Below are positions 1,191 to 61,600 of a stretch of DNA of 64,000 nt, piece by piece (position 1 is the stretch's first letter; every line of letters starts with the position of its first letter). Source of the stretch: Ylistrum balloti (Eukaryota); the NCBI RefSeq assembly GCF_031769215.1, contig NW_026781872.1, forward strand, positions 434,001 to 498,000, read 5' to 3'. Below the pieces are notes generated by a model, which had not been told where the DNA came from, made no database searches, and saw only the letters and a list, made by a program, of their open reading frames with translations. The translations under genes and the position numbers were made by a program.

Positions 1191-3250
1191 TATTAAACAT
1201 TTATTGAATTTGAATTCTGATAATGATTATTTTGACATGATAGCATTTTCTTGTTTTTCGTAAAAATGTGGGTATTTTCTTTGTTGTTTGGTATATGAAT
1301 GTGTAATTCATTCATGTCTTGTACAAACTCACAATATATTTGATTGATTCAGAGCACCGTTTATGTAGATATTCTAAATAATTGTATTTCCAGAAACCAG
1401 CTTCCATCTAATCAGTTGCTTAAGAATTGAGAAATTCTACTGGAGTTTCTGTTATAGATTATCGATTAGTTGCAGATAAATCATGTTTACAGATTACCAC
1501 TGTGTTTCCAAAGGAAATATTTAAGAGCATTCTTGCATATCTCCCCCAATAAAGATGAAGGTGGGTGTGAAGAGTATCACGGGGGTGTGAAGAGTATCAA
1601 ATGGTAACGAAATGGTCACTGTATATACACACAATGACATAAACACATGGACATATATTTAGATGATTTCAGGTAGCCTGTTACATCACTTTTTTCGGTA
1701 CCTGGTTAGGTTCAGCATATATTCGCAAATGTCTCCTTGAGTCTTATACATTGACAATTGCGATGAATGCGTCTCATATGAGAATGCCTCATACAACTTT
1801 TTATGGACTGTGAGAACTTTTCTTTTCTTTTCGAGTTATTACCTTTAGCGTGGATAATTGACTAGGAAACCAATCAAGTTCAAACGTAGCACAATTTGTT
1901 TAGTACCTAAATTCACTTCTAGGGAGATGTAAGCAATACATATCAGAAACTTACTTAACCGGGCAGAGTTATAAATCTTTTGATCACGCAATAATATATT
2001 TTATCTTTCTATATATCTTACTTTTTGGTGTCATGTCTAGACATAACAAATCTAAGTCATTGACAGACATCGGTGAACAAGCGGCCTTCTCTATAATCTA
2101 TACAACGTCTTAAATATTCTCAATTCATAAAGGCAGAAGACTCCTTTATTGCTATAAAAGACAGTTAAACAGTCTAACCAACCAACCTAAAATAACCCTG
2201 ACCGTTACTAGGACATTTATCACCGAACAAAAAAAGGATAACGAGTAGAGTGTACCAGGCTGAGCCAGGAACCTGTCAATTCAATTAGGAAGCAAAGCTA
2301 GAATACTAGATAATGATATAAATGAAGTTGGTATTAGATAATTCCGTGACGTCAAAACCCCAGAGTAATATATGGTGTCAGATGGTATCAAATATAGCTC
2401 TCCATATCACGGAATGGACCTGTGTATCAGTAAAAAAATCCACAGCATATTTCATTTTAATTTCTAATTAACACGTGACCAAAAATTGGCATGATTAATT
2501 ATTGTACGTGTTTTTTTGTGAACCTAACCTAAAACACCACTGTCGGTAAGGGAAATAACATAATGCATATGCAGATCGTTTCTCAATCTTCACATTGTTT
2601 TCTTCATATACAGTTGTGATGTAGAATATCTATTTAAACCTGACAACAAAACAACAAATGTGTTTGTGAAAATTCATATCCGTTTTTTAACTGATGTGGT
2701 GTTTCGCGCTTAAGTTAGGTTATCTCCTGTACCAACATCGATTGAGTTCTCTCATATGTGCCCAGATAGGGCGGAACGTTAACAGTTTGAAAAATGATTT
2801 GCAGCCTTCCAATTCGTTATCGGACGCGTATTTATATAATCAGAGATTTCAAACATTCTAAGACATTTTCGTTTTCCTGTAATTTCGTTATATTTTTATC
2901 GTATAAATGAATTCACAATGGATTGGATTTTATTTATGATAGGTGTAGATTTCATGTATTCACCACATGTACCTGATACACCTCAACACTGATAGTCTCA
3001 GATGACTTTATCTAAATAACTAACCCGTTCCTGTGACCAATATGTATAAAGTGCCGGGCATAAAATGACAGTAATGTAACGGGACGGTGCTGTTTCATAT
3101 TTAACGATTCAGTACATAAACTCTCCCATAAGTACAGTACATTTTCATTAAAGCGCATACGATAAGAGCTGTTGGTTACATCATGCGAAACAGTACTAAA
3201 CAGTTCTAAACTGTCAATGATAACCATATCATTAACATGCAAAATACAGA

Positions 3251-4530
3251 GTAACATATAGTAACATATAGCTTGTTAAATCAGAGGGAGAATACATAAC
3301 ATATAGTAACATATAGTAACATATAGCTTGTTAAATCAGAGGAACAGTACATTACATATAGTAACATATAGTAACATATAGCTTGTTAAATCAGAGGAAC
3401 AGTACATTACATATAGTAACATATAGTTACATATCGTTTATTAAATCAAAGAAACAGTACATTACATACAGTAACATATAGTAACATATAGTTTGTTAAA
3501 TCAGAGAAACAGTATATTACATATAGTAACATATAGTTACATATAGCTTGTTAAATCAGAGAAACAGTACATTACATATAGTAATATATAGTAACATATA
3601 GTAACATATCCCTTAATATATGGAAACATATAGTAACATACAGCTTGTTAAATAGGAGAAAGAGCACAGAGCATATAGTAACATATATTAACATATAGCA
3701 TGTTAAATCAGAGGGATAATACATTACATATAGTAACATATAGTAACATATTCCTTGTTAAATCAGAGAAAGAGTACATACCATATAGTAACATATAGTA
3801 ACATATGGCTTGTTAAATCATAGAAAGATTACATAACAAATAGTAACATATAGTAACATATATTACATACAGTTACATATAGTAAAATATTCCTTATTTA
3901 ATCATAGAAACAGTTCATAACATATAGTAACATATGGTAACATATAGTAACATATAGCTTGTTAAATCAGAGAAACAGTACATAACACATAGTAACATCT
4001 GGTAACATATAACCTGGGGAGGGAGAATGCATAACATATAGTAACATATAGCTAGTTAAATCAGAGAAAGTACACAAAATATATAGTAACATATACCTTG
4101 TTAAATCAGAGAAAAAACACATAACACATAGTAACATATAGTAGCATATAGTATCATATAATTTGTTAAATCAGAGAAAAAATACATAACATATAGTAAC
4201 ATATAGTAACATATAGTTTGTTAAATCAGAGGGAGAATACATAACATATAGTAACATATAGTAACATATAGCTTGTTAAATCAGCGAAACAGTACATAAC
4301 ATATAGTAACATGTAGTAACATATAGTTTGTTAAATCAGAGGGAGAATACATAACATATAGTAACATATAGTAACATATAGCTTGTTAAATCAGCGAAAC
4401 AGTACATAACATATAGTAACATGTAGCTTGCTAAATCAGAGGAAGTGCACATAACATATAGTAACAGATAGTAGCATATTGTTTGTTACATCGGAGAAAT
4501 AGTACATAACGTTTAGCAACATATAGTAAC
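3251..4530. repeat. Compound minisatellite built from the 10-mer GTAACATATA plus a GCTTGTTAAATCAGAGAAACAGTACAT module (composite unit about 47-57 bp)
   Basis: Read directly. Runs of 1-3 GTAACATATA alternate with the TGTTAAATCAGAG module more than 20 times. Confidence 0.95.
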
Positions 4531-14700: not shown

Positions 14701-17700
14701 CCCATTATATTTTAGCGTATCTCACTAGAGACAGCAAACTAGCGTAGTCATTTTCACAAAATATCTTATGAACAGAAAATATGAATTGAATCAGATATTT
14801 AATTGCTTTGATGCGTTTTCACAGACACAACCCAAGGCATTCGTCCTCCTAAAATTATATTTGTGAGAATGCTAAACCCCAGATTAAGAAAAGCATAGTT
14901 ATTCTCTTATTTGCAATATCTCCTATAGGTGGTAGAGGGAACGCCAGTGGTAACTTCAAATTGTCCATCCTTCGAGCCATGGAATCCACCACAGTTCGCT
15001 CGTCACCCTAGAATCTTGGGTAAGTTACGATGAATGGAACCCCAGAAATTGTATTGTTAACAAAATATCTATTATTGTTTTTATATCTTGTATGGATTTA
15101 TTACAATTGTCTATTGACGCAAACGATTATTACACGTTCTGGCCACGAATATGCTTCAAGAGCGAAAAGATGTTCAGGTTTAGATAAAAGTTTAGATAAG
15201 GGAAAAGCGGCAATAACTCAGATTAAAACAATACAATCTTATTATTCATGAAATGGTGTCAGCTTGGTGTGACAATGATATAGAGTAATTTTATTAACCG
15301 TGCTAAAGAATCAATACAGAGTACATTCTGACACGGAACAATATCAAACATGCCTTATTTAAACATATACCTGATCTATCAAGTGTCCTTAGATTGCAAA
15401 TAAACTTTCCACTATGACATGTGCGAATTTTTTCATATGGTTGAATAAATTTCAAGTTATTTGAATATTGCAAAAATCTGTGTCTTTATTTTGTTTGCAA
15501 TAATCGACAACGGTTATATCTTAATTCAAATGTCTTAATATTGAAAATGAAGGATTAAATCGTAATGGAATAGCAGCAGTTTAACAGCTGTAAAGTTGTA
15601 AAAAGCTGATGAGATAAATCCATCCTTAATCGGTGCTTAAACATTATTACATGACCATTTTTATATCACTTCCCTTATCAGTCCGAGAGTCCTAAGTAGG
15701 GATGTTATATCAAAATGGTCATATAATCATCTTTTTATCAAATATTCGTTATCTTTAAAATAAACAAACCACACAAATCAATTTTTTCTTAACTCAACAT
15801 TACAACAGCGATGACACACTATTTACTGATATTCATAGATACATATACTGAGCTGTTTACGTTCGCAGACGACAGATGCGTTTATCACTCATAAGGGAAA
15901 CCAATCCGTAAACGGCACCATTCCGAAATTTAAGTTGGGATCTAAAAAACTTTTATAGGAAACAATTTTAAAAAACGTATTTCTTCCAGGCCAATAATAT
16001 TTATGTTCAAATCAGACAGCTATAAGAGGAAGCGGCAAAATACACAAATTTGAGAGTGGGTGTGATATCACCCGGATAGGTATCAACTTGTGGGAATGCA
16101 CATTTATCACGCATTGTGTTAAAAGTGTTAAAACTATATACGATAATGTTTCAGTATCGCATATAGTTGATAAAATATCACTTACATATGATATCTTTTC
16201 ACTGTTATCAGGTAATGATATTCTTTGATGTGACATTACATGCTCTCTCATTTTTGGGAATCTACAGAAGTAATATAATAGTGATAGTTTTCTGTTCATG
16301 TTTAGTTTTGTTGTGCGGTTCTGAATTTTTTGCAGTTGTGCCTTCATCTAGTACATACTGTTAAGGAAAAAACTATGAAACTTCATTCCAGAAAGCAACG
16401 CTTGTTTGAAAACGAGAGTATTAAATCACGATTTCGAAGACTCAACCTCGTGGTCAGGACTTTGGAACGGTTTCCACTACCGTCAAGACGCCGCGCAAGC
16501 TTACAGTGGAAGCGGGTATATCGAGGTGGTAGACACACCTGAGGGAGGTGGTTCCTACCAAGCATTTACCTTCTTTGACAAACCGACAGTTAAGTACGTA
16601 TACTTGATATAACATCATTTGTTTTATTCTTCTTGCACTGTATCATGGATCTTAGTCAAATTCTTCCTTTTCATATTTTGTCCTAGTTTCATTAAATCCG
16701 TGTTTGAATAAATATTTCATCGATTTTTTTAAAAAAAATTTCCTGGTCAATCCCCTTTTTATTCATACTCCATAGAGTGTTGTTTGGGGGATTTTTTGTT
16801 TGATTGTTTGGTTTGGTTTTATTTTTGTATTTTGGTCTTTGTTCGACCTTTCAGTCGTTGAAAACAGAACAACACAATCACATCTGGGATGCTGAAACCG
16901 TGATATCGAAATAAAGGGTCATTTGAAATGAAACAACTTTATGCTTATACAAAAGACCCAATTTTTAAGGATACAAATATATCACCACTTTCTCCATACA
17001 ACATTGTTTCCGAGCAGATACTAGAATACCGTATTAGAAATCAGCCCGGTATGAGTAATTGTAGAAAATAAATTCCAAATAAAATAAGAACGTGAGGTCA
17101 CTAATGTTTCAAAATTTAAATCTTCATTTCATGGTTTAGCAGTGACAAAGAGAATTTTTAAAAAATCAATAAGAAGTCAGATTTAGATACTGTAAAGCCA
17201 AACAAGGAATTCATAGTAATCATACAACTATTTCATTCTCTGAGGACTCATTGGTGACGCTAAAGACCTTAATCCGGGGGGAACTGCGAAAAATAAAAGA
17301 AAATGCTATGGCTCCAACAATCAAGTTGATCATTTTAGTAGACGAAATGTCGAGTCTTGTCGGTCAATTTTAGAGTATTTCCAATACTGTGTTGTTGATC
17401 ACTTCAATAGGTTAGTTTTTTATTGTAAACCTAGCACTTGAACATTTCATTAATACTGTGTTTTACTTGTCCACAAATGTTGCAATAAGAAAAATAATGA
17501 CATATTGATTGCATTATAAGTTGGGATCGGACTTGAATGTCTTTATATTATGTTTGAATTGTATGTTTTCATTATCAACGAGTATTAGAAATCCCCTGCG
17601 TGAATGTTGGAAATGTTGGCTGGTTAAATCATTATTAGAAATGTGTTAGAAATATTATTGCGTAAAATATTGGAAATGATAGATGTTTTATTGGCATCGT

Positions 17701-19134
17701 ATATGATTCAATATTCGTTAAAATATTACATAACATTTGATTCTATCTTTGAAATGAAATTTCGAATATGTACTAAAATCCACATGTTTATTCGACTAGT
17801 ATCAATTACCTTTATTTGCAGTCTAACAAGAATGGCAATAAAAGCCTGGGGAAAACATAGCGGATCTGTAGGCATGGGCAGTACCAATTTCAGTTTATAC
17901 TGTGACGTCACGGTAAGCGCGTTTTACAACTTTACAACACGAGTCATTGTCTGCTTTCAAATAAATAATCATAATTGTGCTTCCATTTATAAAGAACCTC
18001 GGATTTTCGTGATTTTATTTAATCCACGATGATAAAATTTGACACATCGAAAAGAATAACAATAATCTACTAAGTGTATGTAAACTATATTGATGATAAT
18101 GAGTTTGTAATCCGCCATCAAAAACGTTCATTTGAAGTGATTTCTGTCATAATGTCTGACATTTAAAATATCAATCAAAAAGATCATATACCTCATTTTT
18201 GTCATTGGTTTGATAATGTAAATGTCATTAATTTATCATTCTATTGTAATGTAATAATGTGTAAAACGTTGTAAGTTAACTTCGTCTTTACAGTTACAAG
18301 ACGAATCTGGAACATATGGATTAAACAGGCCATTCTTAGGTGGACAACAGGGAACTACCTGGAACAGTGTTATAGTTACAATTGATCAACCTAAGGTGAT
18401 TATAAACTGTTAAAATACACAGTGATTTCAGATACAAGTTGTAACGCGAATGCTCAATGCTGAGGAAACGGTTATACAATTGGTCATATATATAGGTTAG
18501 ATGTACAAACCCGAAATAATATTATATATATATATTGTGGGAAGAGAGTTTAAGTTTAGTAATGGTTTTGTTAGGTTGGAAGAATTTTTACCGAATTTTC
18601 TTTTATCTTATTTTTATTTTATTTGGTTTTATAGAGGAAAGACGGGATTAAGTTATAAAACAACTGGTGTCATAACCCCGGAACAAGACCTAAATAGATG
18701 GCGTATTGGCAAAGCAAAATTCTAGTCATTATTTTATTGGGATGAACGAATGTTGACTTAATGTTTAAATCAGTAATTGTTTCGGGTTCAAATTTGCATA
18801 AATCAGTGGGAACAAGTATTGGAACAGGGATGAGTCTTTGATCAAACAAGTGGGCCAACACAGGTTATATGGCCTGTCTCTCCTTTTGTTTTCTATAACC
18901 TACACATATTACATGCTGAAAAGGATAGTCGTTACAGAATGTATGACATAATGCATTAAGTTTTTGTTTTAGATTGGATTTTTCTTACTGATATTTTTTC
19001 CATTACAGGGAATCCGGGCAGTAACATGTTACCTTCTATACAAGGGATATAATGGAGGTTCAGCATACTTTGACAAGGTGGACGTTTGGCTTCTCTCTGG
19101 AACCACCGGGTTCGAAGAATGTCAATACACATAA
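5730..19134 (+). CDS. Multi-exon DUF4874 + DUF4832 domain protein with C-terminal CBM4/9-like domain (putative glycoside hydrolase); 5' end not located
   Basis: Exons: 5730-5835, 6699-6893, 8476-8596, 9407-9518, 10378-10490, 10771-10915, 11341-11494, 13604-13719, 13882-14005, 14336-14455, 14929-15019, 16392-16593, 17822-17912, 18294-18395, 19009-19134 (TAA). All junctions are AG/GT except one GC donor, phases are compatible, and the joined frame is open for about 638 codons. Motifs recognised from DUF4874/DUF4832 proteins: NPGRGW, TLVHRHYTLEDFKTTPIS..DFATIREAGFMVVLRFSY, HISQLKPL..AVQAGFIGTWGEWYYT, QIQLRAP, GHHNDCFLA..DRGTY..GGETC, LHFTFLSQSYHKAVLSNW..GC..KLGY, LRNNGYAAP, TRLWIP, VLLAN..GLNNL. 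The family call is from recalled motifs, not a database search. Confidence 0.85.
10914..10921 (+). other. Non-canonical GC 5' splice site (GC-AG intron 10916-11340)
   Basis: CAG|GCAAGA. No GT donor is available in the needed phase 2 before the in-frame stop at 10944-10946, and this junction joins GGETCALDNERG to RHVCSNAEQEL in frame. Confidence 0.75.
12030..13405 (+). mobile_element. Decayed Penelope-like retroelement RT region inside intron 7 of the DUF4874/DUF4832 gene
   Basis: Collinear RT motifs with frameshifts and stops: ADKVSSSFILVCKRYY..LQKELG; LYWIHKSHKNPYKQGFIAGPSSCSTKPLS; NMWILRNSK; IRAFDCFTQYTTIPYSKLK; a PIGTNC-like/SYEAE segment near 12830-12890; FKSIDDVLTLNN (catalytic DD near 12945); YDKCNDFNFPNVNCPFLDS. 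The shared 3' motif follows at 13310-13403. Confidence 0.88.
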
Positions 19135-23961: not shown

Positions 23962-24477
23962 ATTTTTTTATCCTTGTCTGTTCATGTATTTACACTGAAA
24001 AGTGTATAATATCTAGAGTGTTTTTTATCCTTGTCTGTTCATGTATTTACAGTGAAAAGTGTATAATATCTAGAGTGTTTTTTATCCTTGTCTGTTCATG
24101 TATTTACACTGAAAAGTGTATAATATCTAGAGTGTTTTTTATCCTTGTCTGTTCATGTATTTACACTGAAAAGTGTATAATATCTAGAATGTTTTTATCC
24201 TTGTCTGTTCATGTATTTACACTGAAAAGTGTATAATATCTAGAGTGTTTTTTATCCTTGTCTGTTCATGTATTTACACTGAAAAGTGTATAATATCTAG
24301 AGTGTTTTTTATCCTTGTCTGTTCATGTATTTACACTGAAAAGTCAATAATATCTAGAGTGTTTTTTATCCTTGTCTGTTCATATATTTACAGTGAAAAG
24401 TCAATAATATCTAGAGTGTTTAGATATTTACATTGAAAAGTCTTTAATATCTAGAGTGTTTTTTTATCCTTGTCTTT
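23962..24477. repeat. 57-bp minisatellite, about 9 copies, starting about 40 bp downstream of the GT31 stop codon
   Basis: Unit GTGTTTTTTATCCTTGTCTGTTCATGTATTTACACTGAAAAGTGTATAATATCTAGA. Confidence 0.95.
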
Positions 24478-29600: not shown

Positions 29601-31543
29601 TTTGCGGTTCGCGTCTCACGCATTCAGCCACTTGTTAGCTTAAATATAAACTATATCTGCGATTTTTAATAGAAAAAAATAACCCACAGAAATAGCTAAT
29701 TGATATACAAGTATTTCACTTCTATGACAATTTACCTCAAACAAGTTGAGAAATGAACTTGTTTGAAGTTATCTCATGCTTCATAAAGTAATGGTGTAGC
29801 TTGCTAGGCAAAACGCAGATCGAATATCTCATATCTGCTTGTACATACTGACAACCTACATTTGTCCTGTTGACATATATATACATATTCTAATTGAAAA
29901 TATTTTATCGCGGAAGACATTTTAAACTGATAATGATCTGAATGTATTGTTACAAACGCCATGTATATTTCATTTGGTTAAATGTACAACAATTATCACA
30001 TATAATTAAAATACGACGATGGGCTTAGTTTAAGACACTGACATTTACATGGACCGTTTCTTCAATAAGTTGAGATATTGATAGATAGCTTAGCACATTA
30101 GTATTAAAGATTAAACATTATAGCTTTGTTCACAAGATACGTAATGTTATTTAAGCGCAAAGCAAAATGTTTTGTACCGACAATAAAACGTTCTAAAACC
30201 CAGAGTCCATGGCTTGCATGCTACGTTTTCATTCGTTCGAATAGTGGCATGACATTTGCTTTTAAGAGCAAGTCAATAAAAGGGTTGAAAAAGACTGAGA
30301 GATTATCGACCCATACTTCTTTTTTGATTGCTTGTGAAAAAATGAATCATCAAAAGAAGTTTCGGGTGTCAGGTAACATGATTAAGTTTTTATAGATTTT
30401 TTATGTTTTAGTACAATATACGTATTGTGTGAGAAAAAGGAGAATTCTCAAAAACGTTTCGATTGACTGGATCACTGGATTCAGGCCCAGGTAACAAAAA
30501 TAGGTCATGCATACACCGCCAATAAATCAGGTTAGATATATATGAACAAGCCGTGAAAACTGACACCTGGTAAAAACAGACAAAACATCGATATTAATAA
30601 TTCAATCAATGTTATTATTTCAGGATCATCTGGAATCAAACCATCATTAACGCATTTACACTTAGCAATATCCCTTTAAGTAATAGCACAGGGATTTGGC
30701 ACCAATTCCCGATCCACTGTTCACGTGTATGTGATACAGTGACAAGGTGCCTGGGAGAAGGAAAAACACATTTTTTTCTCAATTCTGTTTTTTGTTATTT
30801 TAGGGTCCACAGATCTTAGTGACACGTACATTACTTGGTGTTAGGCGGATATTTATAATCTTTCATACTGCCATCAGCTTAACCTAACGATATCTTCTCC
30901 ATCCGTATTGATAGTTGCTCACTGATGTATCCGTATCCTAATTTAGAGGAAATACATACGGATTTCCTAGGAAGTGCTTGATAGACCGTTCCCGAATTTA
31001 GATATACACATGTATGTATTGCCTTTCAACAGAGAAACAGTATAACTCATCAAAAAATGTTTACAGAGATAGGCTACCTCGTTCCCTAGCTGTGACAGTC
31101 ACGTTTTGTTACTGATCAGCTGAAACAAATGGTAAATGCCTTTACGAGAAGTTTGTGTTGATGTTTAATAGATTATTATCAATATGTTGGTTTTTTTCAT
31201 GTAAAATTTTATGAAATTTGAAAATTAGGTTTGTAATCTAAATTCCTCATCGTTTAGGGGTAGACTGATGTTGTAAATGGAAGAGTGGAATGTCGATACG
31301 GAGTCATCGTTGATTCTGCATTGTTAACACGAAGACTGTTTTCATTACTTGTAGATAATTGAAAAACAAAAAACATGAAAACATTTTCAGAACTAAACGT
31401 GTTTTGAATTTAAGTTTTGAAATCTTTCCAATTGCATACGAATAATGGAACAAAATTATTTTATTTTTTTAGCAACGTTATTATCACAAACATACAAAAT
31501 TCCAAAAACAGAACAATAAGTAATGAAATATAAGTAAAGTAAA

Positions 31544-34500
31544 GTTAACATAGTATTGGTAGTTACACGGGGAAGTTACCATAGAATTGGTAGTTACACG
31601 GGAAAGTTACCATAGAATTGGTAGTTATACGGGAAAGTTACCATAGAATTGGTAGTTATACGAGAAAGTTACCATAAAATTGGTAGTTACACGGGAAAGT
31701 TAACATAGAATTGGTAGTAACACGGGAAAGTTAACATAGAATTGGTAGTTACACGAGAAAGCTACCATAGAATTGGTAGTTATACGAGAAAGCTACCATA
31801 AAATTGGTAGTTATACGAGAAAGCTACCATAGAATTGGTGGTTATACGAGAAAGCTACCATAGAATTGGTAGTTACACGGGAAAGTTAACATAGAATTGG
31901 TAGTTACACGGGAAAGTTAACATAGAATTGGTAGTTACACGGGAAAGTTAACATAGAATTGGTAGTTACACGGGAAAGTTAACATAGAATTGGTAGTTAC
32001 ACGGGAAAGTTAACATAGAATTGGTAGTTACACGGGAAAGTTAACATAGAATTGGTAGTTACACGGGAAAGTTAACATAGAATTGGTAGTTACACGGGAA
32101 AGTTACCATAGAATTGGTAGTTATACGGGAAAGTTACCATAAAATTGGTAGTTACACGGGAAAGTTAACATATAATTGGTAGTTACACGAGAAAGTTAAC
32201 ATAGAATTGGTAGTTATACGAGAAAGTTACCATAAAATTGGTAGTTACACGAGAAAGTTACCATAGAATTGGTAGTTACACGGGAAAGTTAACATAGAAT
32301 TGGTAGTTACACGGGAAAGTTAACATAGAATTGGTAGTTATACGGGAAAGTTAACATATAATTGGTAGTTACACGAGAAAGTTATCATAGAATTGGTAGT
32401 TACATGGGAAAGTTACCATAGAATTGGTAGTTACACGGGAAAGTTAACATAGAATTGGTAGTTATACGAGAAAGTTACCATAAAATTGGTAGTTACACGG
32501 GAAGTTAACATAGAATTGGTAGTAACACGGGAAAGTTAACATAGAATTGGTAGTTACATGAGAAAGTTACCATAAAATTTGTAGTTACACGAGAAAGTTA
32601 ACATAGAATTGGTAGTTACACGGGAAAGTTAACATAGAATTGGTAGTTACACGGGAAAGTTAACATAGAATTGGTAGTTACACGGGAAAGTTACCATAGA
32701 ATTGGTAGTTACATGGGAAAGTTAACATAGAATTGGTAGTGACACGGGAAAGTTAACATAGAATTGGTAGTTACACGGGAAAGTTAAAATAGAATTGGTA
32801 GTTACACGGGAAAGTTAACATAGAATTGGTAGTGACACGGGAAAGTTAACATATAATTGGTAGTGACACGGGAAAGTTAACATAGAATTGGTAGTTACAC
32901 GAGAAAGTTACCATAGAATTGGTAGTTATACGGGAAAGTTAACATATAATTGGTAGTTACACGAGAAAGTTATCATAGAATTGGTAGTTATACGGGAAAG
33001 TTAACATAGAATTGGTAGTAACACGGGAAAGTTAACATAGAATTGGTAGTTACACGGGAAAGTTAACATAGAATTGGTAGTTACATGGGAAAGTTACCAT
33101 AGAATTAGTAGTTACACGGGAAAGTTAACATAGAATTGGTAGTTACACGGGAAAGTTAACATAGAATTGGTAGTTATACGAGAAAGCTACCATAGAATTG
33201 GTAGTTATACGAGAAAGTTACCATAAAATTTGTAGTTACACGAGAAAGTTAACATAGAATTGGTAGTTACACGGGAAAGTTAACATAGAATTGGTAGTTA
33301 CACGGGAAAGTTAACATAGAATTGGTAGTTACACGGGAAAGTTAACATAGAATTGGTAGTTACACGGGAAAGTTACCATAAAATTGGTAGTTATACGAGA
33401 AAGCTACCATAGAATTGGTAGTTATACGAGAAAGCTACCATAGAATTGGTAGTTACACGGGAAAGTTAACATAGAATTGGTAGTTACACGGGAAAGTTAA
33501 CATAGAATTGGTAGTTACACGGGAAAGTTAACATAGAATTGGTAGTTACACGGGAAAGTTAACATAGAATTGGTAGTTACACGGGAAAGTCAACATAGAA
33601 TTGGTAGTTACACGGGAAAGTTAACATAGAATTGGTAGTTACACGGGAAAGTTAACATAGAATTGGTAGTTACACGGGAAAGTTAACATAGAATTGGTAG
33701 TTACACGGGAAAGTTACCATAGAATTGGTAGTTATACGGGAAAGTTACCATAAAATTGGTAGTTACACGGGAAAGTTAACATATAATTGGTAGTTACACG
33801 AGAAAGTTAACATAGAATTGGTAGTTACACGGGAAAGTTAACATAGAATTGGTAGTTACACGGGAAAGTTAACATAGAATTGGTAGTTATACGAGAAAGT
33901 TACCATAAAATTGGTAGTTACACGAGAAAGTTACCATAGAATTGGTAGTTATACGGGAAAGTTAACATATAATTGGTAGTTACACGAGAAAGTTATCATA
34001 GAATTGGTAGTTACATGGGAAAGTTACCATAGAATTGGTAGTTACACGGGAAAGTTAACATAGAATTGGTAGTTATACGAGAAAGTTACCATAAAATTGG
34101 TAGTTACACGGGAAGTTAACATAGAATTGGTAGTTACACGGGAAAGTTACCATAAAATTTGTAGTTACACGAGAAAGTAAATATAGAATTGGTAGTTATG
34201 CAAAAGGTTACCATAGAATTGGTAGTGACACGGGAAAGTTAACATAGAACTGGTAGTGACACGAGAAAGTTATCATAGAATTGGTAGTTACACGAGAAAG
34301 TTACCATAAAATTGGTAGTTACACGGGAAAGTTAACATAGAATTGGTAGTTACACGGGAAAGGTACCATATAATTGGTAGTTATGCAAAAAGTTACCATA
34401 TAATTGGTAGTCATACGAGAAAGTAAATATAGAATTGGTAGTTATGCAAAAGGTTACCATAGAATTGGTAGTTACACGGGAAAGTTAACATAGAATTGGT

Positions 34501-34565
34501 AGTGACACGAGAAAGTTATCATAGAATTGGTAGTTACACGAGAAAGTTACCATAAAATTGGTAGA
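31544..34565. repeat. 31-bp minisatellite, about 97 copies
   Basis: Unit TAGAATTGGTAGTTACACGGGAAAGTTAACA in head-to-tail copies with no spacers. Confidence 0.98.
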
Positions 34566-35482: not shown

Positions 35483-37118
35483 TTATACAGTGGGCATTGG
35501 AACACTGAAGACTTCATTGTCATGCCCAGCATTGTGGACTGAAAAATTAGATTGCATAATAGGGTTCTGCAATCCGTTATTGTTGCCTTGTTGTAAACTA
35601 TAGGACTGCATTGGCAGTGGTTGTTCTTCTGATGTCCTGACACCCATATCAAGGAAAACATCCCTCGACCAACCAAAGATCTGAAAGTAAATCGTATACT
35701 GATATAGGGTTATTCTAATGGTCACACACTGCGTCCTATTTTTAGATGTATTCAGTGTTCTGTGCGAGGTAGTTATACCTTTATCGTTTTCATCTTACGT
35801 ATATTTCAAATTCCAGATTTTCAATGACCAGTCGTTATTGTACCCGAGTTAGATATATCATAGCTGTCCTTTGTTTGTAGAGTTTCGAGAACCAGTTGTT
35901 TTAGAAATTTTGCCACACGAAATGCTAAGCTATCGTGTCATGATTCTAATATTTCAGTGTGACGGCACTATAAAAGCCTCAACAGGCGACTCATCATATT
36001 CTTCTTCTATTTTGTAGTTATCTGGTGCTGTAAAAACCCGTAGAATCAAAATGAGATAATCGCATTAGTGGTTTTGATCTACAGAATAATTATCTTTGAA
36101 ATGTTACCATTATTAGGCAAATGGCTAGACCGATAACAGCGCCACCTATGACGTCTGTAGGATGATGTTTGTTGTCCTGAACACGGGTCAAACATATGTA
36201 GATTCCAGCACCTACTAGAAAGGTCTGAACGGATGGTCCTATTATCCGCATGTACAGTCGCCATTGCAATTGTTGTCGGAAACGGATATCCAAGTAAATC
36301 TATGGATAAAGATTTTCTCCTGTAGATCAGAGTAATCAATTTTATAGTTATAGATATTATCTAATACTATTTACCAACTGAATATTGCAACCATTGAAAA
36401 TAATAATAAAGAAGTCTTGTAGTACAGAAATTTGCAAATGAATCCGTTATCACTTGCCTCAAAATAAATGTCGTTATGTTTTTTGCATCAATATATATTC
36501 AAGTTTGCTTCATGTATTTTTTATGAAAATTTCTTTTCTTATGACTTTTAAAAAAGTAAACCAAATACACAAAGTTATCAATCATAGTTTAGGTGAACAA
36601 CTTCATTGTGCGCAGTCTGACTTTTAGAAAACATCTGATATGAGAGATGAAAACCCTTGATTCAGTAAGTAAACATTATAGGTACCAATTTATTGTTGTT
36701 GTACTGTGAATGTTGTTTTACACATTTTTATTAGTTTTACCAAATGTTTGATTCAAAGGGGAAGCTTTCTTCGCTTAAGTCAGGAACTATAGAATAAAAT
36801 AGACAAAATAAAACGAAAACAATTGTAAAACAAACTTCTACATTCTATGAAATTGGGGTAAAGAGATTTACCCGGAGACTGCCGAAAAAATGTAACGATA
36901 TAAAGAAAACATAGATATAGGAATATAGATGTCAGTATATATATATATATATAGGTATAGATATAGGAATATAGATGTCAGTATATATAGATATATATAT
37001 AGGTATAGATATAGGAATATAGATGTAAGTATATATATATATTATAGGATAAAGATGTCAATATACATAGATATAGGAATATAGATGTCAGTATATATAG
37101 ATAAAGGAATATAGATGT

Positions 37119-37153
<35 letters not shown>

Positions 37154-50662: not shown

Positions 50663-52664
50663 CATCTCTCAACATTTTTTCAGGGGAGAGCACTCTTTAC
50701 TTAAGAATGTCAAGGTCTGGATTGAAATAAAACAAACAAAGTAATGTAGTTATAGTATTTCATTCCATGTCATTTTCACAATAAGGACAGAAACTGATGA
50801 TGAATATATTCACATACAATCTATTTATTACTTACAATATTTATGATATATAGGAAAAAGGTATATCACAGAAAATAAGGATTTGCACTATTCACTTACA
50901 CATCAACAGAAAGTTTGACCCAAAAGCTGAAACTTTGATACAATTTTCTGGACAGTGGTTTTATATCTAATGGTTGTTTTAATGTTTGAGATTCATTTGA
51001 AGTAACGTTCTAAAATAAACAAAATCTTTACAAAAAAAAAAAAAAAAAAACCAACAAAGCCTGCTTAGTTTTACTCCATTTATCAGGAAAAATGATTGTT
51101 TACATATGATGTTACATCAATGACATTAATGTTTTCATGTTATATCTCAGTTTTATTAAGAGTTTTTCTTAGTTGATTCTCAACAAGGTATAAATACATA
51201 TATAATTATATTCGGAAATTCAATAATTAATTTGACATAAGTCTATGTCATATATAATACAATGCACTTCCGTCATTTTCATTGCACTTCAAATAACTTC
51301 CTCGTCAGAATTGAATTTTGAAAAGAGTTTTAGGAATGAGAGTATAGATATACAATTCCTGTATCAAAAGGAATCTTAGCTTTAACCCAGCCAAAACATT
51401 TACAGAACACAACCCATGTCCAGAACATAGCCATTAAAAATCTGTCTGTGCAAATCATATAAACAGTGATTCTCATAAGGTGCATAATGGTATTTTATGT
51501 GTAAAACAAAAGTACAAAAGTTTGGTGGAAGATGATAACATATTATGATCTTACTGTTTTCTTTCACCTTTAAACAAAACAAGAAATATGTATCTCTACT
51601 TCAATAAATATAATACAAATGTGCCTTGGTGGATTTATAAGCATTCTTATAAGCTTATATCAAATATGCTTGAGTGTCTTGCATTCAAAGATTAAATTAT
51701 TCAAAAACTGTCAATAGAATTAACCTAAAAGCTAAGAAATCTAAGTATCTGGTGCAAAATATCTGGCATAGTATGAAGAAAAACTATAAAAATGATAGTG
51801 CAAGTTCTGATGTCATATTGTCTGCTACAAATTTACTCAAACGCACTTTATGTTGCAAAAGAAAAAATCATAGAAATGTTGTTTATAACTGACTATACAA
51901 TTTTTGCCTGATTTGAAACATATTTGCAGACTGGTATGAATATGGAACCTTTATTTACAAACTATATACAATGTTTTTGTATTAACAAGTAGCAGAAAAT
52001 ACAAAACAATAACACCGTCCATATCAGAACTCTTTTAAATTGTATAAATAGCACAACTTTCTTCCATTTTGTTATTCTCTTTTTTTTTTTTTTTGTAGAT
52101 TTTTTTGGGTGTGATGGGGTGGGGGGGGGGGGGGGGAGGGTAAGATATTTCTGTAAGAAATTACATCATGATATTTTGTGTAACAGAATTTACATTAAAG
52201 CATATTATTTTCTGATCCATTTATTCTCTTATACTGCTGCAAATAAGTTGTGACAACATTATATGTTCACAATCTGACTGGAGTAATTCCAGTGATAAAA
52301 CTTTTAAATAATGATGTTTATCAATTTATAAATCCATGAAAGGCACATCTTGGTTCCTTTCAGCAGCATAACAATACAAATCATTTCATGTGTCCAGATA
52401 GGACATTGAAACATTTATCACCTAATATGGTGTTGAAGATATATATGGTACACACACCGGCCATTTAATGCTGAAACTGATTCAATAGTATGATTTGTTA
52501 TCACAATCTGGTACACATGATCTTCTGTAAATGTTCATAAACTGTTCTTAATTCAAGAAGCATTGTAGGATTTGCAATAAATCCTGTAATCAAACAGAAT
52601 AATGTTCCTACGAGAGTTCATTTAGAATTTTTTGAATTGACCAATCACAGGAGTTGATACATCT

Positions 52665-55600
52665 TTAGCCCATTGATACTTGTAACATGTTTGGTGGTTT
52701 ATTCCGTATTGACATAGTAGGAGTGCCCGGAGATTTCCTGAAGCTTGGTTGTGGCTGTGACATCGCAGTTTCGTAAGTTTTCTAAAATATAAAATTATGA
52801 AAATAAGAAACATACGAATGAAATATTAGCTTTTCACTTGATTATTCAAGTCTTTTTCATACAGTTACAGAGTTACATAAAAACTTTTTCCTCCCTATAT
52901 CCAACATGACAAAGAAAAAAAGTAAACCTATGATTTTTTTATTTGTTTATTAACATGTACTGCAGTTCAGTAAGTGTTTCAAAAGATTATCATATTATAC
53001 AAAACCTATTTCTTTTTTCAGAAAATGCCATTACCAATCAGTAGTTTCCTTCCTTGCTAGGAAACTATCAAACACTTTGTCATGATTTTGGGCAATGTCA
53101 ACAACACTGGTAGTTTGAACTCTGATTTATTTTCACAAGCATTCTGCATGATTTTGTATAATTAGAACAGGTCCAACAGTATCTATTTAATTATATCTGG
53201 ACTGAAACCAAATGTTTATCATATAGAAAATGTTTCATGAGGAAAATGCTACATAACCCTAAATTCACCAATATCTATATTATTAGCATGATGATTATGG
53301 GTGATGTCAATCTACGAGTCAATTATCTATAAACATTTTTGAATTTCCAAAATATAATGGATGTTTCAATCTCAAGATAAATGTAATTCTGGACTGATGA
53401 AAAATAATCTGAAAAAGGTTATACATTTAAATATTGACAAAAGCCAAGTTCATGATCCAATTTTTTCAATCAGTAAAATATACTTACTCTTCGCTGAGTC
53501 CTCATCTGAGCATTATAGAAGGCTGCAGAGTCTGGGTTATTCATCAGCAGTTCCATCTGGAGGCGGTCAAACTTCTCATGTTCATCTTCAGGCTGTATAA
53601 GTGGAGATCACTCTTAATAAATGTTTCTTACTTGACAGACCAGCATTAATAATGTGATAAGTTAGCTATGGTAGTGTACCTTACTCCGGTAATCTGCTGA
53701 TTTCTTTATCATTCCAACATCTGTTGTGTCCCTTATCAACATTCTTCAAGTACTACATCAGACAGACTGTTTACTTCATTGTATGACATGTCTCCAATTT
53801 AACATTTAAAACACAACAAAATGGTCCATGTACAATAAAATGTTATCATGGTTAACATAGGCTTTTTATTACTATATTACAGTGCATTTTTGTGATCATT
53901 GAAATTAAAACCAAGTTCAAAATGTTGCTCACGATGAATGTTTGTGACAGGTTCTAATTGTAAAAAGAAACTCTTGCCTTCTAGCATTTCGGTAGACAAA
54001 GTTATCTTTTGCTCAAATAGTGGATCAGAAAGCAAAGGATGGTAGGTTTAATGACTGGTACAGACACTATAGCCATTTTACAATTAGTGTTGTAGACCAA
54101 TCTAAGTGTAAGCTAGAGAAGACTGAGAGGCATCAATGGAGTAGGATACTCTGTGATGATGTGGTCTTCAGGGGCAAACACATCAGAATTGAATACAGTG
54201 GCAGGTTTTAAGGGTATAAAGATATGGTCGCCTTCTTGTTTCTTACAATTCAGGGATTTCTCAAAGGTCACTGAAGACTTAAGCCAGAGGTTGTGTGTTT
54301 GATCCCCAGACACGCTACTCTTTTCTTGTAAAATATTTGTTGAAATTCAGGCTTTCACCAGACATACTTGTATTGTATGACAGATAAGACTTACGATTGT
54401 ATTTGGATTAAATGGTAGCTGTACTCCGGGTCGGACCCCATGACCTTGGGCTATGCTTGTCTGTGCCTCATCAGATGGTCCAACAAAACTCTCAGAATAC
54501 CAATTGTCAAATTCTGCAAAGCAAGCAAATCTTGTCAGTTCTTTAACTACATGGATTTAGGTCTTTGGTTTTTAGAATACCATACTTAGGGGGAAAAAAG
54601 AAAACTTAATGAAGAAGTGTTGTTGGCACTGTTCCACCAGGAATAACCAAATATGCCACACACTTACCATGTACCAAGATGTGTCCACACTGTTCCACCA
54701 GGAATAACCAAACATGTCACACACCTACCATGTAACAAGCGTTGTTGGCACCGTTCCACCAGGAACAACCAAACATGTCGGACACTTACCATGTACCATG
54801 TGTTGTTGGCACTATTCCACCAGGAATAACCAAACATGTCACACACCTACCATGTACCAAGCGTTGTTGTCACTGTTCCAACAGGAATAACCAAACATGT
54901 TGGACACTTACCATGTACCAAGCGTTGTTGTCACTGTTCCAACAGGAATAACCAAACATGCCACACACTTACCATGTACCAAGCGTTGTTGTCACTGTTC
55001 CAACAGGAATAACCAAACATGCCACACACTTACCATGTACCAAGTGTTGTTGGCACTGTTCCACCAGGAATAACCAAACATGTTGGACACTTACCAAGTA
55101 CCAAGCGTTGTTGTCACTGTTCCAACAGGAATAACCAAACAGGTCACACACTTACCATGTACCAAGCGTTGTTGTCACTGTTCCACCAGGAATAACCAAA
55201 CATGCCACACACTTACCATGTACCAAGCGTTGTTGTCACTGTTCCACCAGGAATAACTAAACATGTCGGACACTTACCATGTACCATGTGTTGTTGTCAC
55301 TATTCCACCAGGAATAACCAAACATGTCGGACACTTACCATGTACCAAGCGTTGTTGGCACCGTTCCACCAGGAATAACTAAACATGTCGGACACTTACC
55401 ATGTACCAAGCGTTGTTGTCACTGTTCCACCAGGAATAACCAAACATGTCACACACCTACCATGTACCAAGCGTTGTTGTCACTGTTCCACCAGGAATAA
55501 CTAAACATGTCGGACACTTACCATGTACCAAGCGTTGTTGTCACTGTTCCACCAGGAATAACCAAACATGTTGGACACTTACCAAGTACCAAGCGTTGTT

Positions 55601-58600
55601 GTCACTGTTCCAACAGGAATAACCAAACATGTTGGACACTTACCATGTACCAAGCTTTGTTGTCACTGTTCCACCAGGAATAACCAAACATGTTGGACAC
55701 TTACCAAGTACCAAGTGTTGTTGTCACTGTTCCAACAGGAATAATCAAACAGGTCACACACTTACCAAGTACCAAGCCTTGTTGTCACTGTTCCACCAGG
55801 AATAACCAAACATGTTGGACACTTACCAAGTACCAAGCGTTGTTGTCACTGTTCCAACAGGAATAACCAAACAGGTCACACACTTACCATGTACCATGTG
55901 TTGTTGGCACTGTTCCACCAGGAATAACCAAACATGTCACACACCTACCAAGTACCAAGCCTTGTTGTCACTGTTCCACCAGGAATAACCAAACATGTTG
56001 GACACTTACCAAGTACCAAGTGTTGTTGTCACTGTTCCAACAGGAATAACCAAACATGTCACACACCTACCATGTACCAAGCGTTGTTGTCACTGTTCCA
56101 CCAGGAATAACTAATCATGTCGGACACTTACCATGTACCAAGCGTTGCTGTCACTGTTCCAACACAAATAACCAAATATGCCACACACTTACCATATACC
56201 AAGATTTGTCCGCACTGTTCCACCAGGAATAACCAAACATGTTGGACACTTACCATGTACCAAGCGTTGTCGGCACTGTTCCACCAGCTTCTGGCAATAC
56301 TGTACTTCTGCCTTCAAATTTTTCAGTTCCTCAAAATCATTTTTGTATTGCAGTTTACAATCTTTGAGACGCTTGATCTCAAAGAACTCTTCTTCGCTGA
56401 TAATGACATCGCCCTCCTCGTTATATTGTGGTCCTAAACATGGAAAAAACTTACGGGTTAACAATGACAGGGTCCAGACAGATTTCACAGTTTGTTGTAT
56501 TATAGTTCTAAACACTGACCTATTGATGTGCTAATGTGATATCATGTAATATCAAGGTAAAGACGTATATTGCATTATTAGAAATAGCACTTAATTTCTG
56601 ACAAAGGATGATGTCGTTCTCTAATGGTGTAATACCTTAAATATATCCCATGAAACATTATATAAATAAACTGGAAAAGTAATTTTGTTCCCTCGAATTT
56701 ATCTCATACAGGGGTGATTTTTAGCCCTCACTCCCCCCCCCCCCACCTCTTGTTTTGGCTAAAGTCCAAATCTATTAAATACATAAATCTTTAATTTACC
56801 ATCCCAATACTGTCCATTTATAAGAAAGCATAAGTTTAATGACTTATTTTAGTTTTTATCTTAATTAAGTTTTTATCTTAATTAAGTTTTTATCTTAATT
56901 AAGTTTTTATCTTAATTCATCAAACAAAAAAACAATTCAATCAAATCAATACTTAGGGCAATTTTCATTTCACACCAACTTTTCAGAGATTTTATTGAAA
57001 ATTAAATGTATTGAATAGAAAGGCTACAATGAAATAGAAATAGGTAAAGGGAGTTAACTCTGATTACCATTATCTTCTCTTTCCATGCGATACTTTTCCA
57101 ATCGTTCTCGTGTCTTGTCAATCTCCACCTTGTTGGCATTCACCTGTCTCGCTAACTCTGCATAGGACTGCTTCTTGGAGTTCAAAATTTCTGAAAAATT
57201 AAATGTGGGAAATCTTTCAAATGCAATCCTAAGATATTAAGACTAAATCATTTTACATCAAAAACCCTGGCTTGAATTTTAAAAATTTGTTGGAAAACTC
57301 TTGTAGTAGACAAAAATTCATCACATCAAATATAAAAATCTTGAACATCAACAAGTAAAGCTTGGACAATATATCTTTATTATAAGCAGATGTTACATGG
57401 ACTTTGTTTCCTCCACTGGGAATCAATATTAACAGTCCGGACAAGTCTGTGAAAATGGCTTGTGATTGGTATCAACCAGGACTAGAGAGTCAGTGAAATC
57501 CAGCTGTATTGAAACTTCACAACACTTTTGCTGGCTATTCCATCTTTTGGTTTTCTCCATTACTAGACACCTAATTAATACAGTCCAATGTTGAAAATTT
57601 AAATAAAAATACAAAGATATCTCCAGAATATAATCATAGCTGATATATTTGGAAGAAACTCTTTCTGCAAATATGCCATGAAACCCAGCAGCAGTAATCA
57701 AGGTATTTCCCAGTAGGTCACTTGCCATTATATTATAAAGTACTTTTAGAAAACAAATTATTGCATACATGCCAGGGAATGTAGATCTGAAAGTCCCTTA
57801 CGTTTATTTTCTGTTAGTACCCTGTTGATCTCACTGCCACGGTCAGCTTTGAACTCCTCAAATGCTTCGGTCCTGGGGGGTGGGGTACTCGTGAGGATCT
57901 TGTCGGCCCGAGACACACCTGAGATGCTGGTAGGGGTTGGGACTTCTCCATCCCGGTCATCCCTCTTCTCACGCTCTGAGGGATGTGGAGACTTAATGTC
58001 CCTCTCTCCCTTGGCACTCTGTGAGGGACTACTAATACTCTTTCCTCCCACCGGACTGTAAAAATAATCAACTTTATAGATACATAAAGATTATGAATTT
58101 TATATCCTACCACAAAATGCCATGCTGACAAAATCTCTGACCATTTATGAAGTAAAAGCAGTCTTAAATGGAATGGGTGAAACAGAAATGAACAATGGAA
58201 TGGGTGAAACAGAAATGAACAATGGAATGGGTGAAACAGAAATGAACAATGGAATGGGTGAAACAGAAATGAACAATGGAATGGGTGAAACAGAAATGAA
58301 CAATGGAATGGGTGAAACAGAAATGAACAATGGAATGGGTGAAACAGAAATGAACAATGGAATGGGTGAAACAGAAAATAATGATGGAATGGGTGAAAAA
58401 GAAATTATCAATTTAATGTCTGTTTACTGCAAACAGATACATAATAATGTACAACTTTACATCTAGATGACTAGCATGTTTCTTCACATCTTAAATCTTG
58501 ATATTAAATTAAGGCTTGTAAGCAATCAATTCATATTTACACAAAAAATGAGAGTATTGGTAGTACTGTTTTCTATCCTCTATTTTAAAGTCCAGATGAA

Positions 58601-61600
58601 CATCATAGAGACGTCTTGATGGCAATCTATAAAACAGTACAAGTAAGCCAGGTATCAGCAGTACGTTTTCTCCACTCTGAGAACTGATACCACCAGAAGT
58701 GTTTCTTGTAGGATTTTTAGAAGATGGCAGTTCTAGGTCTGATGACCCATCCTTTACCTGCCACAGTTACCACCACTAGATTTCCTACACTTGGGTTTTC
58801 TATTTTATCAAAAGGTAGGCAGGCATGAAATCTTCCACAAGTATTGAGACATAACTCCATCTCTAAATCTGTGTTGGTTTCGGACATTGTGTCATGGTCT
58901 GATGTAACTCCATCTGGATTGTCACTGAGTATTGGAGATGACGAAAATTCCAATTAAGCAGCTTTTTAAAATGAGTTTGATTTATTTGCAAGTGTACATT
59001 TGATTAACTATTTTGAAACTGTATTAATTTCTATCTATTTTAGAGGGTGCTATACCTTTTTAATTTTTTTCTTCCAATGTATCTAAGTTTTATTTACAGT
59101 GTGTTAGGTTTACATGTTTGTCTTGTATTCTTGTGTAAGTGTAATCATTAAGTGTAATATGGATAAAAGCAAACATTTGGTCAGGAGAGCTTCTAGAGTG
59201 TAAATAAGAATAGTAAGAGAGCAAACAGGACAGAAACAGATACCTTTTTGTGTCACGTCCAGTGCGACTCTTCCTGTCCTTTTCCCTTTCTTTCTTTTTG
59301 AGTTGAACCACAGATGAGGGATCAGCTTTAGCCACTTTTGGAGCCATTCCGACACCGAATCCCTGACCGTCTGGCTCACCCACCAATGTGCCATCATCCG
59401 TTATAGCAACACCCGCCTTCACAGGTAAAATAAAGGGATCACTTAGCAACACAATGCATGTGATACAAGTTTTCATCATCAGATTTAAAATGACTGGATC
59501 CAATTATAATGTATTAAACCTAGGGATGAAGTCCAATATATAAACTCCACCCTACTCTATCAAAGAAACAAGCACCACCCTATCTCCATGCCAACTCTCT
59601 AACTGCCATAAATCCTCCCAATATAGATCCTATACAATCACCCTTCTCCCTCCTGACAGTGCTGTCTATATATGACAGTGTGACTTACCTGTTGAGCTGT
59701 GACAGTGTGACCTACCTGTTGAGCTGCCGCTATAGCAGCAGGGTCAGTCCTGTCTATAAGGGTGAATTTCTGTCTTAATCTCTCCTCTACATCTCTCTCC
59801 ATTTGTCTAAAAAACACAGCAGATGTATAATAGTATACCAAGGACAACATCAGTCTTGTAATATCTGAATGGATCTCCTGATAAAAAATGCATGTGACCA
59901 ATACATAATTCTATCCTCAACAAACTGACATATGTTTTTAACAAAACCTAACTTTATCACAAAAAGTTACCCGCAAAAAAGTACCCATAAAAAGTTATAC
60001 ATTTTCAATACCCACAAAAAAGAAGACCTTTTCAATACCCACAAAAAATATGTTTTCATCAGAAACCGTTATACCTTTTCAATACCCACAAAAAGTTATA
60101 CCTTTTCAATACCCGCAAAAAAGTTATACCTTTTCAATACCCACAAAAAATTATACCTTTTCAATACCCACAAAAAAGTTATACCTTTTCAATACCCATA
60201 AAAAGTTATACATTTTCAATACCCACAAAAAAGAAGACCTTTTCAATACCCACAAAAAAGTTATACCTTTCAATACCCATAAAAAATTATACCCATAAAA
60301 AATTATACCTTTTCAATACCCACAAAAAAGTTATACCTTTTCAATACCCATAAAAAATTATACCTTTTCAATACCCATAAAAAGTTATACCTTTTCAATA
60401 CCCACAAAAAAGTTATACCTTTTCAATACCCACAAAAAAGTTATACCTTTTCAATACTCACAAAAAAGAAGACCTTTTTTTATCTTTTTCTTTCATTTAA
60501 ATAGTCAAGATCACCTCTGATTGTGTAACTTTTTATACCTTTTATTTTTAAGTATTAGATTGGAACCCTGGTCAGAAATGGTTCTAGCATTTAAAGTTAC
60601 AAAACATTTGTACCTAAATATTTGTACCTTTTTGTATATTTTTTTATATGGGCCAATGTAATTTATGAAAGCTTGTGTTCCAGTGTTTTATACGTTACCG
60701 AGACAAAACAACATTAACTTACAGATAGATATCTCGGAATCCTTCAAAAGTTCCCTGTATTTGTCTGATGTTTACGATCTGTAACATAAGGAAATATAGG
60801 GATTGATTTAAAGTCCATCTAACAACAGAAAAAGGTAAAACAAATATAGACGTACCCATACATCAGCAGTAAACCATATGGGATATAGATATTGGTAGAT
60901 GTGACACTTGAAAATCAAAAAGTATCTGTATAAAGTTAAACTGTTTAAAAGTAACATATTACTCACGTCAATTTCTTCCAGTGAACCTTCCAAGTAACGC
61001 CTGACTTGCTGCCGTATCTCATATCTCTGTTGCTCTGACAGAGGCTCATATGTGATCTGAGTCCGGTTTGTCTGTTACAGTTATAAACAAGTGGTAGTTA
61101 TCTCCCCTTGATAAGCAATGGTATATAATGTTAAAGTCAGGTTCAATCAATGTACAGTGTTTTAAGCCAGGTAATAAGCATACCTACAACAAATGCTCTG
61201 TAGAAATGTCATCATGTGATAAATCACGAACCGATGTAATAACTCGTCCCAAATTTCTGAGGGGATAACATTTTTACTGTTTCTTTGGGTACTGAAATGA
61301 TCCATGAAATAATAAGATGTGTTTCGATATTAGTCATGGTTCAGTAAGATTAGAGGTACAGGCTGCTGACAGAGTAATACTGTCACTAGTCGACCCAGTC
61401 TTGTTACTAAAGGATATTTTGACAATTTCATTCATATGGAACTGATTAAATGGTATGTGATACAGATTGTTTGTTATCTGGTACAGAACACCTTCATACA
61501 TATATTAAATTGATTATCATACTAATGTTTGGCTGTTAAATCAGAAATCACATATTTGAACAATTTTATTTTGGGTCATGAGAAATACTCTCAAAATAAG

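Follow-up and report, generated by a model that had tools for sequence, protein, structure and literature searches.

The 64-kb window analysed here is the whole stretch from position 434,001 to position 498,000 of contig NW_026781872.1 of the saucer scallop Ylistrum balloti, and coordinates refer to it unless another contig is named. Its minus strand carries exons of KIF9, a conserved ciliary kinesin (KIF9 gene coordinate x is window coordinate 74001-x). One intron of this gene is nearly filled by a minisatellite in which the end of the preceding exon and its 5' splice site are repeated head to tail. The features that make up this arrangement are listed below, with a slash marking the splice junction here and throughout.

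56254 to 56434, minus strand: KIF9 coding exon, residues 667-726 of XP_060063157.1 by translation; repeat unit 1 takes its exonic part from the last 34 nt.
56248 to 56256, minus strand: authentic 5' splice site ATG/GTAAGT, cut between 56254 and 56253, read from the sequence and needed for the RefSeq junction.
54615 to 56287, minus strand: 61-bp minisatellite of 27 full units and a 26-nt partial unit, defined by Tandem Repeats Finder (TRF) and by the unit register; unit 1 straddles the exon-intron boundary.
54666 to 56192, minus strand: 26 decoy donors, with GT at 56253-61k and 56252-61k for k = 1 to 26, all of which keep GT in the unit list.
56189 to 56191, minus strand: in-frame TAA met on read-through of donor 1, at the end of the open reading frame (ORF) 56189 to 56515.
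54514 to 54614, minus strand: unique 3' tail of the intron, in whose sequence a candidate branch site, a pyrimidine tract and the acceptor AG (54515-54514) are found.
54395 to 54513, minus strand: next KIF9 exon, EFDNWYSESF...NPNTI, 100% identical to residues 728-766 of XP_060063157.1.

An initial annotation, made from the letters alone, had named the gene KIF9, and this identification is borne out. Exons were searched one by one rather than as a joined spliced model. The exon that precedes the array matches residues 643-699 of the PDB KIF9 chain 9ijj_c (E 8e-16), and the four window exons that were compared with XP_060063157.1, the RefSeq KIF9 of Ylistrum balloti, all match it at 100% identity. 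The end of the motor domain is found upstream, at 63130-63002, and the three KIF9 exons downstream of the array are intact and conserved. The annotated protein reads ...RQRLVH/EFDNWY, which corresponds to the first donor joined to the acceptor at 54514.

The exon end itself is conserved, reading QKLVEQCRQRLV in the scallop and QRLVDQCRHRLL in the solved KIF9 chain 9ijj_c. Because this conservation extends from scallop to vertebrate KIF9, the exon must be the source of the repeat and not the reverse. An all-against-all protein search with the exon returned 200 matches, many of which are genomic read-through ORFs. Beyond the exon end, dozens of these read-through ORFs go on with G.., whereas spliced proteins go on with EF[DE].W. 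The two kinds of sequence diverge exactly at this point, and thus the intron position is old and conserved across metazoan KIF9 genes. Full-length bivalve KIF9 proteins, and then the scallop cluster, were reached by way of the Tegillarca KIF9. The same colinear junction is common to the KIF9 of Tegillarca, Pecten, Mizuhopecten, Argopecten and vertebrates, and the annotated Y. balloti product is colinear with every orthologue.

TRF reports one array with a period of 61, 27.4 copies, 89% matches, 0% indels and a score of 2555. The initial annotation had described an exon end and donor amplified about 27 times over 54613-56287, and apart from a trivial correction of the far end to 54615 this description stands. 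When cut in register from 56287, the array yields 27 complete 61-bp units without a phase break, followed by a partial 28th unit at 54640-54615. Each unit consists of 34 nt of exon and 27 nt of intron, namely 34 nt identical or nearly identical to the exon end (LVEQCRQRLVH), the donor, and 21 more intron bases. Unit 1 (56287-56227) includes the real junction at 56254/56253, and therefore the exon stays intact while the copies sit in the intron as 26 decoys.

No unit has lost its donor. Across the 27 full units the donor hexamer reads G/GTAAGT in 21 and G/GTAGGT in six, with GT lost in 0 of 27, and 15 carry the 13-mer of the true donor, ACATG/GTAAGTGT, unchanged. For the decoys alone, the counts are 20 of 26 with GTAAGT, six with GTAGGT and 14 identical to the true donor over 13 nt. 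This unit composition, with its GTAAGT or GTAGGT donor and its retained GT, is as first described. So is the extent of the array, which was said nearly to fill an intron of 1.74 kb: the KIF9 intron (56253-54514) measures 1740 nt, and the array stops 99-100 nt before the acceptor AG. The last decoy donor, at 54667-54666, lies 152 nt from the acceptor, and a candidate branch site, CTGAC, can be read by eye about 21-25 nt upstream of it. No higher-order structure was seen in the array, where the mean inter-unit difference is flat (5.1-7.1) at lags 1-13.

The TAA at 56191-56189 confirms that read-through of the first donor meets a stop codon. A frame check by local translation of every decoy likewise upholds the claim that any downstream donor gives a premature stop: use of donor 2 creates a TGA at the splice junction, and use of donors 3-27 includes the TAA. 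Every one of these stops falls upstream of three exon junctions. Splicing from any decoy would introduce a stop codon, and the product would probably be degraded or truncated. We considered whether local RNA structure might mask the decoys, and rejected this idea because the predicted accessibility of the donor 9-mer shows no useful difference between the true site (0.017) and the decoys (0.001-0.053).

The anatomy of the unit also bears on recursive splicing, for which the array had been proposed as a substrate. In such a scheme splice sites would be regenerated at each step, and the intron would be lost one unit at a time. The repetition itself invites this idea, and a weak CAG in each unit, 22 nt before the donor, could be read as an acceptor. 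However, ratchet sites need AG directly before GTAAGT, an arrangement present in 0 units, all of which read ATG or TTG at this position. In addition, the stretch before the internal CAG is rich in purines, and use of this CAG would produce introns of 39 nt, a length that is too short. Stepwise removal of this intron therefore seems extremely improbable.

The array is real and is present in other individuals. Logan contigs of four other DNA samples from two studies enter it from both flanks and end inside it, at 54644 on one side (about 30 nt in) and at 56213-56241 on the other. Short interior contigs match the array at 99-100%, with a word depth above that of the single-copy flanks. This combination of raised depth and short interior contigs is the pattern expected of a tandem repeat that has collapsed in a short-read graph. 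Summed word depth over the array is about 1.5 times the flanks in sample X3 and about equal to them in the others, although such depth is no measure of copy number. One might suspect that the assembler had erred, either in the array or in its length, because short-read contigs cannot span it. However, both borders are seen in four independent samples, the interior unit variants are recovered at above single-copy depth, and the 27 units show neither indels nor phase breaks. We consider an artefact of assembly extremely unlikely.

A search of the genome (648.5 Mb) with 611 bp of the array found the array itself as the sole match. The absence of copies at other genomic loci rules out a dispersed satellite or a transposon-borne repeat. 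The array is locus-specific, young and lineage-restricted, as the orthologous introns of other scallops also attest. We find 0 copies of the exon end in the 676-nt intron of Mizuhopecten yessoensis and 0 in the 744-nt intron of Argopecten irradians, and no copy within the first 70 nt of the intron on a pectinid-like contig (L005). The 250-nt intron of Pecten maximus holds one decayed copy, which scores 37 against the Ylistrum unit consensus (shuffle maximum 22) and 32 against Pecten's own junction (shuffle maximum 24), and whose donor has been destroyed by a 4-nt deletion. A third copy in the Pecten intron, seen by eye, scored 14 and did not beat shuffles.

The unit borders of the Pecten copy and of the Ylistrum array are not the same. 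Both carry a G-to-A change at a CpG, possibly through convergence. The intron tails of Ylistrum and Pecten do not align significantly (score 15, versus a 95% shuffle score of 21), and for this reason the intron as it was before the expansion is not reconstructable. Mean pairwise identity among the 27 units is 89.6%, without indels. This 10.4% difference compares with one of 32% at the third codon positions of the exon when Ylistrum is set against Pecten, which places the expansion, or the latest homogenisation, well within the Ylistrum lineage. Units 2 and 27, at the edges, are the most divergent and are similar to each other. Divergent edge units are usual for tandem arrays.

We also looked for junction-spanning arrays in the KIF9 genes of other bivalves. 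The following cases were found, with coordinates given on the contig named in each line.

L008, 6151 to 7920 (an ENA metagenome-derived contig; also in L006 and L007): mytilid array of the exon end and donor GTATGG, 1.77 kb.
L012, 40619 to 40820: Mytilus californianus array on this same donor, 50 bp x 4, in one copy of the region; the other copy has a single unit.
L012, 17814 to 17896: M. californianus array on the donor of the next exon, 39 bp x 2.1.
L012, 18638 to 19091: M. californianus array on the acceptor of the following exon, 58 bp x 7.8.
L010, 19080 to 19578: 70 bp x 7.1 array in Mizuhopecten yessoensis, with 94% matches, made from the acceptor and initial 28 nt of the exon orthologous to 56254-56434 of the window.

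The mytilid mussel, whose KIF9 is 91% identical to that of M. californianus, carries an independent array seeded on the same KIF9 exon end, with a period of about 106-116 bp and 16 donors. GT is kept in 14 of its 15 decoys. Six intron-free mytilid ORFs of 835 amino acids, from transcript contigs of 2.8-3.2 kb, read ...CRQKLIQ/EFDKWY, with 100% identity to the exon of L006 and 98% to that of L008. Because all six show the canonical junction, the assembled mytilid mRNA is made from the first donor despite the decoys. The same mytilid locus holds a separate array, 82 bp x 32 with 99% identity, at 9731-12402 of L008. In M. californianus, the annotated gene range on L012 holds the 3' exons twice (16746-17835 and 40452-41913), as a tandem duplicate or a haplotig.

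The Mizuhopecten array amounts to seven decoy acceptors upstream of the real one. That both donors and acceptors have been amplified argues for a mutational process that is blind to the junction. No junction-spanning arrays were found in the KIF9 loci of Ostrea and Tegillarca, none is detectable by TRF in Pecten KIF9, and in Pinctada KIF9 nothing beyond a trivial repeat, 12 bp x 2.1 at one acceptor, was seen. Given also that about 23% of the window is minisatellite, these data are read most simply as a high background rate of small tandem duplications, the products of which are tolerated where they fall on exon borders.

These observations also raise the idea of a local mutational hotspot for junction-spanning duplication around this KIF9 exon, which would be compatible with the neutrality of each array. 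The exon has been hit on its donor side in Ylistrum, in Pecten (decayed), in the mytilid and in M. californianus, and on its acceptor side in Mizuhopecten. In an unbiased scan of four other loci, two of five junction-spanning arrays fell on this exon, against about 5% expected. However, the sample is small and partly post hoc, since the mytilid was found by searching with this exon. Moreover, Ostrea, Pinctada and Tegillarca show nothing at the exon, and the units differ in length (61, about 48, 50, about 110 and 70 bp) and in their borders, with no common motif seen. A hotspot is therefore possible but rather unlikely.

Duplicated splice signals are familiar in other settings. The short-distance tandem splice sites known as GYNGYN donors and NAGNAG acceptors lie 3-12 nt apart, are often both used and make small in-frame changes. 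There, as in KIF9, duplicated signals compete for one partner site, but the KIF9 decoys follow one another at 61 nt, lie out of frame and seem to be silent.

Closer counterparts come from human genes. The first monomer of a 37-bp variable number tandem repeat in intron 7 of F7 (IVS7; 5-9 copies) spans the exon 7 boundary, and further listed cases include IFI6 (also called 6-16; 25 pseudo-sites), CBS IVS13, LMNB2 and PDGF intron 4 (Borensztajn et al. 2006, PMC1557585). Splicing of F7, LMNB2 and PDGF employs the most upstream donor alone, and experiments on F7 showed that its pseudo-sites are functional but are outcompeted in a choice of the 5'-to-3' scanning type (PMC1557585). IFI6 and CBS differ in that their two nearest pseudo-sites also take part in splicing (PMC1557585). 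The KIF9 array resembles this group in that its first monomer spans the boundary, so that the true donor is followed by a row of pseudo-donors in the intron, and in its similar range of copy numbers (up to 25 in the human genes) and unit lengths (37-100 bp). It differs from F7 in belonging to a mollusc gene, in holding 34 nt of exon per unit rather than 4 nt, and in its strong donors (GTAAGT, against the weak GTGGGT of F7), and it is known here from sequence.

In amphioxus, minisatellite-like tandem duplications of exon-intron boundaries, called 'mirages', occur in Adh3 and in the globin genes BflGb6 and BflGb9 (PMC3087553). They affect both 5' and 3' boundaries and leave regular splicing undisturbed, and their units are 81-100% alike, with the edge units less homogenised (PMC3087553). 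The KIF9 array is likewise an invertebrate boundary duplication with less homogenised edge units. However, mirages have 2-6 units of 10-160 bp whereas the KIF9 array has 27 units, and the bivalve cases span several families at one orthologous exon. Boundary-spanning minisatellites are thus already known from human genes and from amphioxus, and the KIF9 case is a large, young, lineage-specific example.

We favor the interpretation that the array is a boundary-spanning intronic minisatellite of the mirage or F7 IVS7 type, with the exon-proximal donor used and the decoys unselected, and assign it a probability of roughly 0.8. Three features of the class are present: a head-to-tail array of minisatellite size, the real junction in the first monomer, and an ancestral, intact exon as the source. 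A 61-bp segment, of which 34 nt close the KIF9 exon and 27 nt open the intron, would have been duplicated in tandem, and slippage or unequal exchange in the Ylistrum lineage would then have raised it to 27 copies. The spliceosome would pick the most upstream, exon-proximal donor, and the whole array would be removed with the intron. On this model the decoys would persist through the youth and homogenisation of the array rather than through selection.

Donor 1 is very probably the one in use in Y. balloti cells, and would be used exclusively or almost so, as judged from sequence and by analogy with the related systems. The initial annotation had offered, as one of its alternatives, that exon definition robustly picks the first donor. 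This choice is favored by the RefSeq model, the downstream exons, the mussel ORFs and the precedent of F7, but leakage to a decoy is plausible (see below). A word search for transcript fragments that cross the junction returned none from pectinids.

Selection on the decoy donors was considered and rejected. Conservation in the donor columns does not exceed that elsewhere in the unit: over the 27 units, the donor 9-mer shows 12 differences from the consensus versus 15.9 expected. The GT dinucleotide has 0 differences versus 3.5 expected, a result that carries no weight since 34 of the 61 columns are invariant. Most likely, the decoys are neutral and tolerated, and not regulatory.

This result bears on the proposal that the array is an unproductive-splicing rheostat, in which some transcripts would use decoys, gain a stop codon and be degraded, and copy number would tune the output of KIF9. 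Such a mechanism would make sense of 26 intact decoys, 14 of them equal to the true donor over 13 nt, and of the premature stop that each would introduce upstream of three exon junctions, and pseudo-sites are indeed used in human IFI6 and CBS (PMC1557585). However, regulated unproductive splicing would lead one to look for a conserved alternative site, and none is seen: the array is absent in Mizuhopecten and Argopecten, and the Pecten intron holds a lone decayed copy. One check proposed at the outset was to look for the array in sister species, and its outcome lends the rheostat no support. In addition, the donor columns lack excess conservation, similar arrays strike acceptors and other junctions just as readily, as fits a mutational by-product, and the mytilid analogue yields canonical mRNA. 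We therefore regard a rheostat as improbable.

The reiterated donors might instead serve as a landing pad for the U1 small nuclear ribonucleoprotein, enhancing recognition of the upstream exon or blocking premature cleavage and polyadenylation. The array does offer 27 strong U1-complementary sites within 1.7 kb. The idea is drawn from general U1 biology, and no result here points to it. Relatives with an intron of 250-750 nt and no array make the same protein, acceptor-side arrays of a similar kind carry no U1 sites, and the donor columns are not preferentially conserved. A U1 function is thus very unlikely.

Several points weigh against our preferred interpretation, that of a neutral boundary-spanning minisatellite with exclusive use of the first donor. 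The count of 27 copies comes from the assembly alone, as the short-read contigs of other individuals end within the array, and donor usage in Y. balloti rests on the RefSeq model. Classical competition experiments sometimes favor the donor nearest the acceptor, which here would leave a workable intron of 152 nt. Because the first one or two pseudo-sites are used beside the true donor in human IFI6 and CBS (PMC1557585), leakage to donor 2 or 3 is plausible in Y. balloti. Finally, several junction-spanning arrays fall on this one KIF9 exon, and of the 51 non-redundant arrays counted in eight bivalve KIF9 loci, 7, the discovery case among them, straddle a junction versus 2.9 expected under random seeding. 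This excess of about twofold is modest, but it leaves placement by pure chance not fully comfortable.

A broader possibility is that minisatellites of bivalves (scallops and mussels) fall on exon borders more often than random seeding allows, with a hotspot at this KIF9 exon, or that leaky arrays tune expression heritably by copy number. We regard this possibility as doubtful. If true, the excess at borders would point to a mutational process tied to exon-intron junctions, and leaky arrays would provide a heritable, copy-number-dependent tuning of expression.

As a single locus, the KIF9 array matters little, being one more boundary-spanning minisatellite. Its value is comparative and modest: in at least three bivalve lineages, arrays of decoy donors or acceptors have arisen independently at one exon of a conserved ciliary kinesin, and the protein remains colinear. 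This suggests that in molluscs, too, the exon-proximal splice site is strictly chosen, as experiments showed for human F7, and that bivalve genomes hold a large natural collection of such splice-site 'experiments'. The initial annotation's description of the locus as a natural experiment on splice-site choice is fair, although exactly this experiment has already been done with F7. With RNA data, the bivalve arrays could be mined for the rules of splice-site choice.

A second, smaller case is present in the same gene, as follows.

59673 to 59726, minus strand: 27-bp x 2.0 duplication of a KIF9 exon end and its donor, 96% (TRF).

The two donors of this duplication, at 59715 (GTAGGT) and 59688 (GTAAGT), are 27 nt apart and in frame, and use of the second would add nine in-frame residues. 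RefSeq uses the first (AAAQQ/AGVAI).

Minisatellites make up about 23% of the 64-kb window, which holds about ten large arrays. In addition to the KIF9 array at 54615-56287, these include 3250-4530, 23964-24421, 31541-34564, 36909-38577, 43776-44877, 46338-50662, 58167-58412 and 59982-60468. The array at 46338-50662 extends over 4.3 kb and has a 65-bp unit with higher-order periods of 130, 184 and 498. Its units carry ...ACATAAT/GTAAGT on the minus strand, and a unique stretch at about 50662-50720 immediately precedes it. This array, too, may have been seeded by a donor, in that case one of the next minus-strand gene. In the upstream KIF9 intron, near a poly-G tract, an indel polymorphism was seen at 56669-56745: in three of the four other samples, 75 bp are missing and a single T stands in their place.

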